In this document: positions 11,192-60,697 of the stretch, piece by piece | Position numbering within the stretch: position 1 is the stretch's first letter | Layout: every line of letters starts with the position of its first letter | NCBI GenBank assembly: GCA_904063045.1 | Contig: CAJFCJ010000001.1 | Location: 1,116,001-1,180,000, forward strand | Length of the DNA: 64,000 nucleotides | Reading direction: 5' to 3' | Source of the DNA: Dimorphilus gyrociliatus | Taxonomy: Eukaryota; Animalia; Annelida | The notes under the pieces: generated by a model | Told to the model about the DNA's origin: nothing | Seen by the model: the letters and a program-made list of their open reading frames with translations, nothing else | The model's database searches: none | Translations under genes and position numbers: made by a program

Positions 11192-11746
11192 ATGTCGGCC
11201 GAAGGATCATCCCCAGCTACCCCAAAGCAACAAAAAAAGAAGGCACCAAAAGCCGCTAAACCGAAAAAGGTTGCCTCCCATCCGAAATACTCTGTAATGA
11301 TCGGAGCAGCTCTTAGCGCTCTGAAGGAAAGAAATGGCTCATCCAGGCAAGCAATTTTAAAGTACATCATGGCGAACTACAGCGTTGGTGATGAAAAAAC
11401 TGCTAACAATCACCTGAAGTTAGCACTAAGAGCTGGAGTGAAGAATAATAGTCTCAAACAATCCAAGGGAACTGGTGCATCTGGTTCATTCAAACTTGCC
11501 GATAAGGTGAAAGGAGAAAAACCGAAAAAAGCAAAGAAGGAGCCAGCAGAAAAGAAGAAGAAAGTTACTAAGAAAGCTGAGAGTTCACCTAAGAAAACGG
11601 AAGCGAAAAAGAAGCCCGCCGCAAAGAAACCAAAAGAAGCCAAGCCTAAGAAGGCCCCCGTGAAAAAATCTCCGGCAAAGAAAGCTAAGGCCCCGAAGAA
11701 GACGGCAAAAAAACCAGCAGCAAAAAAAGCAGCCGCTAAGAAGTAG
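11192..11746 (+). CDS. H1: Linker histone H1, H1.0/H5-like (replication-independent type), intronless
   Basis: Globular domain HPKYSVMI…GSSRQAILKYI…LKQSKGTGASGSFKL plus a Lys/Ala/Pro-rich tail. A CCAAT box (~11086) and TATA-like element lie upstream; AATAAA is at 11922. Confidence 0.96.
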   Translation: MSAEGSSPATPKQQKKKAPKAAKPKKVASHPKYSVMIGAALSALKERNGSSRQAILKYIMANYSVGDEKTANNHLKLALRAGVKNNSLKQSKGTGASGSFKLADKVKGEKPKKAKKEPAEKKKKVTKKAESSPKKTEAKKKPAAKKPKEAKPKKAPVKKSPAKKAKAPKKTAKKPAAKKAAAKK

Positions 11747-12092
11747 ACATGAAATAATCACTTGTACATAAAAGACTGTTATTTACATATTGTATATAAA
11801 ATGTACAATGCATGCATATATTCAACTATATTCATGTATATAGATATTATGTATTCTTTATTTAAGTATAGTCAGAACCCGAGCTCTGCCATAACTGTTT
11901 AATAAGAGTTAAACCAATAATAATAAAGAGCGATTAAACTACTTTGGAGACACTTGATTTCTTTTTTAACGATCAAACCAAAAATATGCTTTGATCATAC
12001 CTCGTGGTAAAAGTACTCAATAACGCGTAACTGATGAAATTATCACAGTTTATTCGAAAATGAACATACAATAACTTTCAAGTTAATATTAT

Positions 12093-13088
12093 TCAAAATG
12101 GCGGTAAACCAAACTCTTCAGGAGCAAATTCTTGAAGAGAATTCAAAATCAAATTAACACCCTTCAGCGGTTGTTCCCAATCAGATTTGCTAACGTTCGA
12201 ATCGGGTATCCAAACGCATTTCATACCTGCTGCTAAAGCTGATTGAACTCCATTAGGAGCGTCCTCAAAAACAAGAACCTGATGGAATTCAATTGTCATG
12301 CAGATTAAAAAGAATATTTTTCTTTACCTGTTTATTATCTTGAGGTGGATTTTTGAATCTCTTAGCTGCAACTAAAAATACATCAGGTGCTGGTTTCCCT
12401 TTATGTACTTCAGGATCAGACGAGGCTAGAACCTCATGATGAAATAGATCGAAAAGTTCGCCATGATTTTGGCGTTTTAAAGCATAACTATAACTATTTG
12501 AACCGGTGGCAACTGCAATAGGAATTTTATGCTTGTGTAGATGTCTTATCAGCTTTTCAGCACCTTATAATGAAAGCCCATGTTAAAATGATAAGAACAC
12601 ATAAACCTCTGACCAATTAATACCTGGCAATAATTCAGCCTTTGGAAATAGTCTAGATTGTCCTTCATGCATGTGCTTTAGATATTCTTCAACAGTAATA
12701 GGCAGATTTAACTCATCTAAAAGGATGAAAATTATTTTGTGGTCGTGTTAAATACATGAAAATCATTAAATCTTGATCAAATACAATCAAGATAAAGAAA
12801 GCGCAGCGAGAATTAAAACACAATATTACTAACCAATGGCCACTTTTGCAGCTTCCTGTTCCTGTTTTCCCATTTGTTTCAATTTCAAGTCCCATGTAAA
12901 TTTTTTATTATATTTTTCTAGCATCTCTTCTAGTATAAGAGTATATAACTTCTCCGTATCTACCAAAATTAATTTATTATCGCTCAGGAAAATTCATGAC
13001 AATGTTAAAAGCAACATTCATTTAAATAGAACAAACCTAGAATAAGACCATCTACATCAAAAATTACATGTGATATTTTATTATCCAT
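12093..13088 (-). CDS. PUDP: Pseudouridine-5'-phosphatase (HAD family, HDHD1), 5 exons
   Basis: MDNKISHVIFDVDGLILDTE (HAD motif I), IPIAVATGS, GKPAPDVF, VLVFEDAPNGV. Confidence 0.92.
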
Positions 13089-14057
13089 TTTACTAATATT
13101 TAGAATTTAATCGAAATGATTTATTTATAAAATTAAGACTTATTACAAAATATCAGTTAATACATGAAATGTTGATCGAATAGTGCTATCTGAAAAATCG
13201 CCAATTTTCTAATCTATCAATAATCTTAATATCTTAATTACAATAGTAATAATTTCAAATGATATTCATAAATAAATATAGCTCGTCCTATATAAACTAG
13301 TTTGACTTTTGTTATTGTTATGCAAGATCGACTAAATAGAATAGCATCATTTTCAAAGCTAATTGTAAGATATATGTGCGCAGTGTACGTTAAATGTAAA
13401 TTTAACAACAAAAGCCTAAAAACAAACTATGTTGTCAAATAGAGTATCAAGACAAAAATTTATTGATATAAATTATTAATATATATTCAGGCAAATCCAT
13501 ATCTATATAGATATTAATCCCTTTTATATCTAATTAATGAAAAGAAGATATCATTTATAGTAGCATCTCTAAAAAAGTCACATATAAAACATTAAGTTTA
13601 GAATTTGTTTAATTCTTTGTTATTCACTATTGATTTGTAAAGGGAATAGTTCATCATTGATTTTAGAATTGGCTGAAAATAGCTATACTACATTTTCTAT
13701 ATATGAGTGCTTTATGTAAAAATAAATATATTACATAATAAGCGTCTTTTGTATAAATTGAAATTGTAATAAAAAATTATCTTCTCTTTGCTGCAAAATA
13801 CTAAAATTATGTTAAATTGTGGTAGTTTAAGGTGGGATTTAATTCGATAATAAAAATGAAATGCACAGATTAATTGTAGAAGGGAAAGTTTCTAATCAAA
13901 ATAATTAACTACATGTATTTGACAAAAAAATGTTAATTTTGCTAAATTCGTTTATATATCTCGTTGCTTTTGGTAACATTAATTGGAATATAATTACAAA
14001 GGGTGTACACTGGAATTCTTTTATTTCAATGAGAAAAGCATATATGATTTTTTAATG

Positions 14058-14096
14058 CAGCCAGGTGGCGGTATGTACATACGCGCCATCTACTGG
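14058..14096. promoter_or_regulatory. Inverted pair of CTCF-binding motifs around the palindrome TATGTACATA
   Basis: The + site CAGCCAGGTGGCGG matches CCASYAGRKGGCRS at 12/14. The - site CCAGTAGATGGCGC matches at 14/14. Confidence 0.7.
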
Positions 14097-14290
14097 ATAT
14101 AACATGGAATAAATTATGGTAATATATTAAATTTTAAAGTCTAATTAATTTTAAGAAAGATATACTAAACAGTGATTTTTTTTATCACTGAGAGCTTCCT
14201 TTAACCCTTCCCTAAATCTTTCCGCTGAGAAATCGTTTTAAAAAGGAGAAAAGCTGAAATAAACTAACGGCCGGACAGTGTGTCTGACCT

Positions 14291-14300
14291 GCGCATGCGC
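14291..14300. promoter_or_regulatory. NRF1/Ewg motif GCGCATGCGC in the CTCF core promoter
   Basis: Perfect palindromic consensus about 130 bp upstream of the putative non-coding exon 1 donor (AG|GTTAGT at 14433). Confidence 0.6.
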
Positions 14301-15084
14301 AAAACGTATCGGCCATATTAGCATTGTCAGGAATATTTAATCGTTTTCGTCTTCTGCCTATAGATATTAAGATATTGCGCGATCAGATATTTATCGCCAT
14401 AAAACAAGCAACTGACAAGACCACGGAAAAAGGTTAGTTAAAGATTTTTTGTTTATCATCCAAGTATAAGACTCAATTCGCTTGAAAACGGCGGCGCTTT
14501 CACGGACGCCATTACTGGGCAGGTGGCAGTAACGTTTTAGAAGATGGCGCTTTCTACAATTTGGGTGCATTCAGTGACATCTAGTCATGCCAAAATCTTT
14601 TAGAAATTGACTCCAGGACAGGGGAAGGGTTCAATGTTAGATACTTTCCAGAACTTGTCCAGTTTTATTGTTCAACTTAACATCGGCAAAAATCCAAAAT
14701 GGCGCCACTGATATATTTAGAACTACACTATTTTTGCGTGTAACAGTTACGTGACGGTGGATAATGCCCATGGCTTTATAATTTATCATTCACCAATGAA
14801 TATGCTTTAAATTTATGTGATTTTGAACTGTATTTACCCAGCGTAAAATGCTAATTGGAAGCGTTCAGTAAAATTGGAAAATAAACAAATCGGTATCTTT
14901 TTCGGCTATAAAATTTCTTTTTGTCAAAAATAGTCTTTTTTTCAAATTTTCTTTAAATATTTTTCTATAGTATAAAAGTGAATTATATCCGCAAATTAAA
15001 ATGCACTTTATGTTAAAAGCTATTTTTATAGGCGAAATATATCTCAAAATGAACATTTTATAATTTCTTAGACTAACGATTAAA

Positions 15085-17624
15085 ATGGATGCTACTGGAA
15101 CTACACAAGTCGAAAGCAGTGATCCTGCTCTAAATGACATTCAAAGTTACCTGGATAACTTTAATAAGGAAATTTCTAATGGTGGTAGCCAACAACAACC
15201 TGTTCAAGTCTTAACCGAAGGCACTGCATACTATACCGTCAAATCAGAGGGAGAAAAAGCAGGTCAAAGAGAAGCATCTGCAACAGGAGACTCTGTTGTG
15301 CTGACCAATGTGGCTTCAACATCTGGTGAAGAAGGCAAGGAAGGAGCTATTCAGGTTGCAGCCGCTGACGGTCAAAATAATGATGCCGTTGTTTTGAGTG
15401 CTAATCAGTATCAAACTGTAACTATCGTTCCCTCGGATGTTGATCAGTCAGGAGAAATGTCATACGTTCTCATAGTATCACAGCCAGAAAAACAAGATGA
15501 AGAGGAAAAGCAAATTACCGATGCTGATATGTCTGTTTATGACTTTAAAGAAGATCGTAGTGGTATGAATAGAGGAATGAGAATGCAGCCACGAAAGCCT
15601 ATTACTGGCCTTCCTTCTCAATTGATGTGTTCCTACTGCAACTACACGAGTCCAAAACGCTATCTCCTCACTAGGCACATGAAAACTCACTCCGAGGAGC
15701 GACCGCATAAATGTTCTATTTGCGACCGTGGATTTAAGACAGTTGCATCTTTACAGAACCATATCAATACGCATACTGGAACAAAGCCACATAAATGTAA
15801 AGAGTGCGACTCTGCTTTCACAACCTCTGGTGAATTGGTCCGACATGTTCGTTATAGGCACACTTACGAGAAACCGCACAGATGCACCGAGTGTGACTAT
15901 TCTAGGTGAGCTTGACAAAATAATTTTTCTGTGAAGAAAAGTTCTAAAACTATTGTATAACTATTGCAGCGTAGAATTGTCGAAACTGAAGAGACACATG
16001 AGATCACATACAGGAGAAAGACCCTATGCCTGCCCTCATTGTGCATATGCCTCTCCTGATACTTATAAGTTAAAGAGACATTTACGAGTTCATACTGGTG
16101 AAAAACCTTACATTTGCGACGTTTGCGACGTAAGCTAGAATTCTTTTTTTTGCAAATGTCCTTCAACTAATTTTGTCATTCATTTTCAGGCAAGATTTAC
16201 ACAGAGCAATTCATTGAAAGCTCATATGCTAATTCACAGTGGAAATAAGCCAGTTTATCAGTGCGAATTATGTCCCACTACTTGTGGGCGTAAAACTGAC
16301 CTGAAAATCCATATTCAGAAACTGCATACATCGGATAAACCGATTCCCTGTAGAAAATGTGGTAAAAGTTTCCCTGATAGATACACCTATAAGATTCATT
16401 TAAAGACTCACGAAGGCGAAAAGTGTTTCCGATGTGACTTCTGTCCTTATGCTGCACTAAACCAAAGGCATTTGGAAAGTCATATTTTAACCCATACTGG
16501 TGAGAAGCCATTCCAGTGTGATGAGTGTGAACAAACATTTAGACAAAAACAACTGTTGAGACGACACAAGAACCTGTATCACTCTCCCGAATACATTCCG
16601 CCAAATCCTAGAGTAAGAATTACATAAAATTGTTTGTATTAAACATTTCATATTGAGTTGTTTTTCTAGGAAAAGGCGTTCGAATGTTCGGCTAGTGGGT
16701 GCGACAAGAGCTTCGCTCACCGAGGCAATCTAATTCGCCACATGCAACAACACGAAGAAGGTGAAATTGATGGTAATGTTCTTTAAAAATTTAGTTAGTA
16801 TAAATGGAGCTAATATAAATTGTTTTTCAGGCGAAACAATGATGGTAAAAGCTGAAGGTGACTTAATGTTAGGTGAACAAGGCGAAAATCTTGTAGGAGA
16901 AATGGTTGACGAGGAAGGAAACACTGTACAACAAGTTGTCCTCATTCAACAACCAGACGGACAAGTTCAAGTTGTTCGTAAAGGAGATTCTCAACCTTTG
17001 ATAGTAACAAATGTAGCTGACCCCAGCGCTGGTGTAGAGGAAGCGTTGGCAACAGGCGAACAAAGCAGCAGAGCTGACAAGGAAAAACTGTCCATGGATG
17101 GAGACGAATCAATTAATGATGGTAAGTAGGACGTGCTTGTTGGAAATAAATAGCATTTCATAATTAATAACAAAAATAGATGACGATAACGAAATGAGAG
17201 GTCTAAAAGCTTCCCCCTCAACACCAGGCGAAGTCAGCCGAAGGGGGCGCGGACGACCACCGAAGAGACCGAAAATGGATGATGAGGATTACGATCCATC
17301 CGATGACGCAGAATACACTCCCAGAGGAGGCAGAGGGTTTGTGTTAGTTGTGTAATAGAATTTTCCTATTACGTTTACTTATGAAAACCGTTTGAAATAG
17401 AAGACCTCGAAAGGAGGTGTCAGTTGTCGATGAACCAGTTGCCAAAAGACAAACGCGAGAATCTGTAAGAACACGTGTTACAAGTAAAGGAGGTATGTTA
17501 TGATTAATTTTAAGTTTATCTTTGAAAATTAAAACTATTGTTAATGCAAGTAGAATCTGATGTAGACGAGAAGAAGGAGCAAAAGAAAAAAGACATAGAA
17601 GAATGCTTCGGTTTCGACTCTTAA
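15085..17624 (+). CDS. CTCF: CCCTC-binding factor, 11 zinc fingers, multi-exon; 5'UTR intron about 14433-15072
   Basis: SVYDF motif, then fingers [55 protein letters not shown] and HRGNLIRH. Two C-terminal AT-hooks; the frame ends …CFGFDS*. Confidence 0.96.
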
Positions 17625-23657: not shown

Positions 23658-24298
23658 CTATTGTTGTATTATTTTTGGTATTAGACTAGGTCCTTGAACA
23701 TCTTTCAATTTTATGGCTTTTTCCCTCAATTCTTCGTTTGTTAACTCTTTTTCAATTTTCTTTCGTTTCCTGATTCTAGGAGCTTTTAGTTCATTCAATC
23801 TTTTTTCAACTTCGAGCCTTCTCACTTCCAATTTGTGTTTAGTTTCGTCTACAGTCTCAAATTCGGGTGCATAACAAACATGTAAGGTTGATCCGAAGAA
23901 AGGAGTATCATCTAGCTTCTTTTTTGCATTCCTTGCTGATTGAATATCAGTAAATTTTGTGAAATACACCTCAGAAAACTCTTCTCTAGGATAGTCGCTT
24001 AAATTTTCAAGTTTTTCCAGTTTTCCGAATTTGACTAGATTTGATTCAAGCTCTTTATTAACTTTAATAGATGGAACATTTTGAATAAGCAGATAATGAG
24101 ATTCCTGGCTAATTGTATAAGTCTGATAGGACAGCAATGAAAAAGATTGCATAGAGATAAAATACACTAATATTGTATAAAAACCTTGACTGCTCGTAGT
24201 TTTCTTCCTCTACGATATTTAGGGCGGTTTAGGCAATATTCTTGTTTTATATGATGATCTCTCAATTTGCTCTTATCAACTTCATCCGCAGCTATCAT
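23658..24298 (-). CDS. RBM48: RNA-binding protein 48 (minor-spliceosome Bact component), 2 exons
   Basis: HHIKQEYCLNRPKYRRGRKLRAVK|TYTISQESHYLLIQNVP…AKKKLDDTPFFGSTLHVCYAPEFET matches RBM48. Confidence 0.9.
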
Positions 24299-24793
24299 CA
24301 CTTACAGACAAGGCTAATATAAAAACGAAATAAAAAGTCCAGTTGAAATATTCATCTATCAAATTATATAATCAAGCGCCATCTTTCGGGCAAAAGACAC
24401 GACGGAGTTGTCTCTTAAAAATTAGCACATATACAGTATACTTACTGTATATATAGAGAGATATATAAAGCATGCAAATATTTAAATGATATACGTCACA
24501 TAATAATCTCCTTAATACCATGAAGAAGTGTTTTATGCAATGCATCATATACTGAATATATTTGATATAATACTCGAGGCATATTAAATAAAATTAGATA
24601 GTTAAAAAATAGTTGAATTAATTCATTATAATTAATTTGTCTAACTCAAAACGAACTGCACTCGATACTGCAAAAAAAAAAAGAGGGTATAACACCCTCG
24701 GAAATTAGAATACTGTTAGAAATTACGAAAACAACCATTCTCAATAAGATTTCATAAGCTTTAATCCTTAGATAATTATATAGCGTATAATCC

Positions 24794-57395: not shown

Positions 57396-57687
57396 TTGAT
57401 TAATTTGTCTATATAAAAAGATATAATTAGCTATTTTATTCTTGTAACAAAGAATTCGATAACTTTTGATATTTTTTCATCTTTTTGCATATCGTAGGTC
57501 AAATTATAGTTTTATTATTATGCACTTATTAGACAATTATTAAACGTATACCAGAGAGGGCGTAAGTGTACAGAGCGCACTTTTAACGAGACAGATGGCG
57601 CCAATTTAAAAAAAATTACTCTAGTTAACGATACTAATACTGCATAGTACTTGATCATATGATCAAAGTCATGTGACCTAGGCAGAT

Positions 57688-59908: not shown

Positions 59909-60697
59909 CTATTAATTGTCTAATGACAGATTCTAAGAGTATTTGACCCAAGTAATAAAACTACAAGGTTACTCTTGAACATCTGTTTTTCAATTTAATG
60001 TAATTACGACATAGAATGGTTATGGAATTGTACTTTCATTTTAATTCTTAGTAATGAGTAACTTTTGGAGAAACGGTATAAATAAGTTATAAATGATTGA
60101 TAAATCATACTTTATATACAAACCTGTATGTGATCTATTCAACAACTTGTATATATAAAGAAATATATAAAAATTGTATATACCGTATATACAGTATAGA
60201 TACAGTAGAAATTTATATATATATATTATTATACTGTATATGTAATCACATAAACAAGAAGTAAATAAAGGTTGATTATTTAAATGCAATCTTTATTCAT
60301 GAAATTTGATAGATGAAAAAAGTATTATGATTCGTATTAGAAAATTTCTGGTTAACATATTCATTGAATATAACCATTTTGTTGGTTCCTAATGCAATAA
60401 TCTCTTTCAATGTGATAATGAGACTGGTGGCGCCATCTCGAGTAATATGCTCAATATTATTATTCTATATCTGTTTTTGTGTTGGTGCAGACATCATTTT
60501 GGTGACCGTGGCGATCAATACTATTCGATGATAGGATAAATAAGCTAAAACATAACAGATCGCTTGTTGAATTTATTGTTTTAATCAGCTTGATAGATTT
60601 TGCAACAGAAAATGTCATTTAGATAGAAATTAGATGGATCCATAATATATCCAATTCGTGAATTTCGTGTCAAAATATTAAAAGGAATGAAAAATAG

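Follow-up and report, generated by a model that had tools for sequence, protein, structure and literature searches.

A strong CTCF-type motif lies between the divergently transcribed genes for CTCF and a HAD-family hydrolase in the miniature marine annelid Dimorphilus gyrociliatus. We propose that this motif (site 2; 14083-14096, minus strand) is a working promoter or boundary element bound by the worm's own CTCF, and we assign this reading, which draws on sequence comparison, a probability of roughly 0.6. Coordinates refer to the window, the whole stretch of DNA that was analysed, 64 kb in length and corresponding to positions 1,116,001-1,180,000 of contig 1. Site 2 belongs to the top CTCF-type motif class of the genome, sits in single-copy DNA a short distance upstream of the first CTCF exon, and is covered by a contig from a Tn5-tagmented library. 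A weaker look-alike that faces it (site 1; 14058-14071, plus strand) is probably a fortuitous neighbour.

To our knowledge, all animals studied so far are sensitive to the dosage of CTCF, and we know of no account of how the CTCF gene itself is controlled outside vertebrates. If worm CTCF occupies the promoter of its own gene, the compact genome of this species would provide a simple test case for promoter-level feedback.

Sequence and layout of the element

Read directly from the window, positions 14058-14096 consist of CAGCCAGGTGGCGG TATGTACATA C GCGCCATCTACTGG. Site 2, CCAGTAGATGGCGC on the minus strand, agrees with the vertebrate CTCF consensus CCASYAGRKGGCRS at 14 of 14 positions. Its core is TAGATGGCGC, the form preferred in this species, and it carries C at position 2. 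It is the sole perfect match to CCASYAGRKGGCRS in the 64-kb window, and none of 100 shuffles contained one. Site 1, CAGCCAGGTGGCGG on the plus strand, agrees at 12 of 14 positions, lacking C2 and A3 of the consensus. Its core is CAGGTGGCGG, which ends in GGCGG rather than GGCGC. When up to two mismatches to CCASYAGRKGGCRS were allowed, the window contained 4 matches, compared with 1.2 expected.

The two sites are convergent and lie 11 bp apart in GC-poor spacer DNA. A sequence-only reading of this stretch had described a forward 12/14 and a reverse 14/14 match facing each other, and both the letters and the orientation are exactly as it gave them. Its chance figure of about 0.001 perfect matches per window agrees with the 0.0013 that we estimated from base composition. 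The perfect 10-bp palindrome that it placed between the sites is present and in fact extends to 12 bp (GTATGTACATAC, 14071-14082, without strand).

Together with the flanking TGGCG and CGCCA, the palindrome forms a near-perfect 27-bp inverted repeat with one extra base. As single-stranded DNA, the segment 14050-14105 was predicted to fold into a hairpin of -10.4 kcal/mol (z = -2.96), a value that none of 200 shuffles equalled. The arms around GTATGTACATAC were not reported by a gapless repeat finder. Shuffled sequence thus has less hairpin potential than the inverted repeat, and extrusion of a cruciform from duplex DNA would be a hypothetical further step. The 121 bp around the site pair occur once in the genome, which rules out a repeat or transposon origin for the pair.

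Site 2 belongs to an enriched motif class

Motif classes were counted across the 77.9-Mb assembly (349 contigs) with the reversed pattern as the control. Because the motif is strongly over-represented in this genome, uniform chance is the wrong null against which to judge a single occurrence. The full 14-mer CCASYAGRKGGCRS was found at 75 sites (control 8), and the exact 14-mer of site 2 recurs at 8 other places among them. The relaxed pattern YAGRKGGCRS gave 3,903 sites (control 674). The core class of site 2, YAGATGGCGC, gave an anchored count of 999 (control 11); corrected for the end letters, this becomes about 1,776 against about 20, an over-representation of approximately 90-fold. Two related classes were also abundant: YAGGTGGCGC (426 sites, control 11) and RAGATGGCGC (522 sites, control 26).

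Exchange of the last letter altered this pattern. Classes ending in GGCGG, namely YAGATGGCGG (200 sites, control 88) and YAGGTGGCGG (85 sites, control 62), were 5- to 9-fold rarer than the GGCGC classes and near control level. The terminal C is therefore essential in the species motif. Site 2 falls within the enriched class (YAGRTGGCGC with its terminal C) and site 1 does not. YAGGTGGCGG, the class of site 1, stands barely above its control, so that site 1 has no genome-wide support. Given this near-control class and the missing C2, the proposed pair of CTCF sites resolves into a strong site accompanied by a marginal one: the half of that claim concerning site 2 holds, and the half concerning site 1 does not.

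Flanking preferences were derived from 52 sites in 264 kb and a hand tally of 100 listed YAGATGGCGC sites. C occupied consensus position 2 in 42% of the 100 listed sites, compared with about 16% in background (2.7-fold, p = 2e-10). At position 4, where vertebrates have C or G, 56% of the 100 listed sites carried A rather than S. As the worm motif prefers A at this position, the 14/14 agreement of site 2 with the vertebrate consensus is partly luck. Y stood at position 5, before AGATGGCGC, in about 77% of sites (hand tally), and T followed the core in roughly 58% of the 100 listed sites. The species motif can be approximated as nCnAYAG[A/G]TGGCGCt. An upstream CCAS was considered as a selected part of the motif; it accompanied 75 of 3,903 sites and 8 of 674 control sites, a difference that was not significant (p = 0.21), and in the hand tally C at position 2 was the one letter of this extension to stand out.

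In 10,241 ATAC peaks of D. gyrociliatus, no motif is more abundant than that of CTCF, the factor to which HOMER assigned the motif found de novo (Martín-Durán et al. 2020, PMC7854359). The motifs in those peaks lie mostly in promoters, are mostly single and show no directional arrangement (PMC7854359). The strong classes add up to about 2,700 sites in a genome of about 14,000 genes. At this density, one strong site is expected at about 18% of promoters (roughly 1 in 6) and two at about 1.7%. With so large a share of promoters potentially equipped in this way, the occurrence of a strong site at the CTCF promoter is only slightly remarkable.

Across the window, the loose 9-mer core occurred 11 times (1.2 expected). 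Four of these matches cluster in a 500-bp stretch at the 5' end of CTCF. Besides sites 1 and 2, these include site 3 (CAGGTGGCAG, 14520-14529, plus strand), a match to the loose core only, ending in GCAG. The terminal-G classes that we counted, YAGATGGCGG and YAGGTGGCGG, are weak; site 3 likewise ends in G, its own class being outside the count. Site 4 (AAGATGGCGC, 14541-14550, plus strand) belongs to the RAGATGGCGC class and has A where Y is preferred, which makes it YY1-like as well. Three further enriched-class sites of the form N-AGATGGCGC occur at 24376-24385 (minus), 57592-57601 (plus) and 60430-60439 (minus). The first of them precedes the start codon of a minus-strand ORF ending at 24167 by about 210 bp, a promoter-like position. 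Overall, the CTCF locus is motif-rich but is no outlier.

Close pairs show no preferred geometry

Close pairs were defined as loose cores separated by a gap of 0-40 bp anywhere in the genome. The 31 loci found comprised 10 convergent, 16 tandem and 5 divergent pairs, proportions that fit a 1:2:1 expectation (chi-square p = 0.44). Gaps in the convergent pairs ranged from 8 to 27 bp without a preferred spacing. Orientation and gap length together rule out the convergent 11-bp pair as a recurrent device, and the geometry to which the sequence-only reading had attached importance does not recur genome-wide. Uniform placement would yield about 8 close pairs (N²×41/G), and the surplus can be explained by sites simply crowding together in promoters. 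In 264 kb of sampled sequence, strong sites came within 1 kb of each other in one other case. Both the convergent 11-bp layout and the palindrome are particular to the CTCF locus.

The CTCF gene and its neighbours

Protein comparison identifies the downstream gene as a true CTCF orthologue. Its exons were searched separately, and the junctions within ZF4 and ZF6 were read directly. The best solved-structure match of both exons tested was human CTCF (7w1m; E = 1e-62 for the first coding exon and 7e-55 for the second exon tested), in agreement with the identity originally proposed for this gene. The first coding exon (15085-15906, plus strand) encodes ZF1-ZF3 and the beginning of ZF4, preceded by the N-terminal region, which contains a YDF motif. 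The worm and human proteins are colinear over the whole stretch between the SVYDF motif and ZF10, both included.

The DNA-reading helices are well preserved. Those of ZF3 (TSGELVRH) and ZF5 (DTYKLKRH) are identical to human CTCF, that of ZF4 differs by a change of V to L, and ZF7 retains its R and D. The ZF6 helix, QSNSLKAH, is the form common to insect and other invertebrate CTCFs that we retrieved. In human CTCF the N-terminal YDF motif contacts cohesin. The worm keeps this motif (MSVYDFKED, window 15538-15546, plus strand), which aligns with human VSVYDFEEE.

On the other side of the spacer lies a HAD-family hydrolase gene (12035-13174, minus strand; PF00702, E = 2e-9), called PUDP in the sequence-only reading and assembled here from spliced RNA contigs with five exons. 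The contigs take its 5' end to 13174 or further, leaving about 880 bp to the site pair. An intronless linker histone H1 gene (11192-11746, plus strand; PF00538, E = 4e-30) adjoins its 3' end.

Transcripts and possible open chromatin at the locus

RNA and Tn5-library contigs were obtained from the sequencing runs of a 2020 study. A contig from run X4 defines a 5' untranslated exon 1a of CTCF (14265-14430, plus strand), joined from 14430 to 15070 across a GT..AG intron (14431-15069) that connects it to the coding exon. An alternative, longer leader (14403-14891, plus strand), seen in run X2 with a joint from 14891 to 15071, reads through the 14430 donor and uses the one at 14891; contigs of X5 and X4 also cover it. 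The 14430 joint was present in X4 and absent from X2, which suggests that samples differ in leader use. The longer leader contains sites 3 and 4, which fall in intron 1 of the shorter form. Taking the start of CTCF as the start of the RNA contig (14265) rather than a CAGE-mapped position, the site pair lies 170-205 bp upstream and site 2 about 175 bp upstream. The two divergent genes are separated by a spacer of about 1.1 kb. A perfect NRF1-type palindrome, GCGCATGCGC, is located at 14291-14300, about 25-35 bp downstream of the CTCF RNA contig start.

In the Tn5-tagmented (ATAC-type) library of run X3, one contig covers the site pair (13817-14176, without strand; depth 8.1). A second, with adapter at both ends, extends over the region where CTCF starts and takes in sites 3 and 4 (14268-14627, without strand; depth 29.3). 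Within the 3.7 kb examined, the only other X3 contig was 11900-12089, between the H1 and HAD hydrolase genes, and none fell in 12090-13816. Run X3 carries Tn5 mosaic-end adapters, which appear as loose ends on the contig neighbouring 13817-14176. The pattern over the site pair fits open chromatin, with the contigs marking presence rather than peaks or footprints.

Proposed role and alternative readings

The factor's own motif lies in the control region of its own gene, as autoregulation would call for. From the motif class and its placement we infer that CTCF binds site 2 and affects transcription there. In the model that we favour, fingers 3-5 of worm CTCF would read the GATGGCGC part of the core. 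Near a transcription start, site 2 would then work as a promoter or boundary element in the manner of its approximately 2,700 counterparts. Feedback would be possible because the gene served by site 2 is CTCF: this wiring would permit the protein to act on its own transcription. Self-regulation of this kind is plausible by analogy, with a precedent in mouse. The broader interpretation of the sequence-only reading, that CTCF occupies its own upstream region, is thus partly supported. The class and position of site 2, the CTCF helices and the mouse precedent speak for it, whereas site 1 and the pair geometry do not.

Other explanations for the element were weighed against this role. Sites 1 and 2 might form a two-molecule autoregulatory switch resembling the mammalian 2xCTS, with cooperative or mutually exclusive occupancy across 11 bp setting CTCF dosage. 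The facing motifs with their 11-bp spacing would suit such a device, as would the clustering of 4 of the window's 11 loose cores in a 500-bp stretch at the 5' end of the gene and an inverted repeat that folds better than every shuffle. Clustered promoter CTCF sites are also known in mammals, and the TP53 pair is oppositely oriented (PMC4562119). Against this, the class of site 1 is unenriched, its missing terminal C being worth 5- to 9-fold in genome-wide counts, and its position 2 is not C either. With 31 loci, close pairs are uncommon; they show no orientation bias, their gaps vary, and the motifs in the worm's ATAC peaks are mostly single (PMC7854359). The finger-to-triplet register further suggests that fingers 1-2 of two facing molecules would take up about 12 bp, more than the 11-bp spacer provides, such that full co-occupancy looks crowded. 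We regard the two-molecule switch as decidedly unlikely.

Site 2 could instead be read by another factor, such as a YY1/Pho-like or other zinc-finger protein, in which case it would be a promoter site like any other and would say nothing about CTCF feedback. The YY1 consensus AAGATGGCGGC has AGATGGCG in common with the worm motif, and site 4 contains a YY1-type AAGATGGCG. The motif was assigned to CTCF by similarity only, position 4 prefers A over the vertebrate S, and CCAS is not significantly enriched. However, about 77% of sites have Y rather than A before AGATGGCGC, the motif ends in GGCGC and not GGCGGC (the GGCGG classes being so much rarer), and C at position 2 is enriched 2.7-fold. These features of the motif (Y before AGATGG, the GGCGC ending and C at position 2) fit CTCF better than YY1. 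The HOMER assignment of the de novo motif (PMC7854359) and the conserved reading helices of worm CTCF point the same way, and we consider a different reader unlikely. Quite unlikely, in our view, is the reading in which site 2 has no function here, being a chance or neutral match in GC-poor spacer DNA whose accessibility comes from the nearby core promoter. The locus was picked out after the fact, and the expected frequencies of one or two strong sites per promoter leave room for coincidence. Yet a perfect 14-mer is expected only 0.0013 times per window, and the Tn5-library contig over the pair is separate from that over the core promoter. The approximately 90-fold enrichment of the core class, moreover, implies that most of its instances are under selection.

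Comparison with known systems

Seven other invertebrate CTCF loci (97.6 kb), with 10 core sites in all, gave a mixed picture. Three of the 10 preceded the first listed coding ORF by at most 1 kb, compared with 0.72 expected (p = 0.036), the distances being to ORF starts and not to transcription starts. Four of the seven loci had no core site within 1 kb upstream, and one core match fell inside a neighbour's ORF. In one locus (L022:7700-7708, minus strand), the sole core in 16.9 kb lies 293 bp upstream of the first CTCF coding ORF. In that of another invertebrate (L026:2462-2470, plus strand), a core site lies 465 bp upstream. A word search for the CTCF of a close relative returned only distant CTCFs, the best being a transcript with 59% identity, and a metagenome scan found no close kin of the worm. 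Coral, marine and seawater metagenome or metatranscriptome runs contain 6-16% of the sampled words of the stretch, and the worm or very near kin may occur in aquarium or reef samples.

The fly CTCF motif has the core AG[AG]TGGCGC and a weak upstream part. The worm motif shares both properties with this Drosophila-type protostome form, and the ZF6 helix QSNSLKAH of the worm protein recurs in the insect and other invertebrate CTCFs retrieved. The worm site also lies between divergent genes, with a putative boundary role.

Mouse CTCF binds its own promoter in testis, as determined by ChIP-seq (Rivero-Hinojosa et al. 2021, PMC8219828). As in the worm, the factor's site lies at the promoter of the factor's own gene, an arrangement that suggests autoregulation. 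The mouse case rests on ChIP-seq and the worm case on sequence. The two arrangements might descend from one old bilaterian dosage circuit in which CTCF targets itself for homeostatic feedback. The weak facing site and the enriched-class site in intron 1 would then reinforce the promoter site. We find this extension highly doubtful.

Mammalian promoter 2xCTS elements, such as those of TP53 and PRSS50 (Pugacheva et al. 2015, PMC4562119), likewise contain two close CTCF-like motifs, and the worm motifs are oppositely oriented as at TP53. They differ in that only one of the worm motifs belongs to an enriched class, pairs are rare in the worm genome, and the worm element is known from its sequence. 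The worm also has no BORIS paralogue on record.

Site 2 has the same genome, motif, proximity to a start and Tn5-library coverage as the promoter CTCF motifs already reported in Dimorphilus (PMC7854359). That class was described genome-wide, mostly as single motifs, and the promoter of CTCF was not singled out. The CTCF locus differs from it by the weak second motif and the palindrome beside the strong one. The locus belongs to this published motif class and involves no new mechanism; its value is that of a convenient test locus, where a single strong site lies in a 1.1-kb spacer upstream of a defined start.
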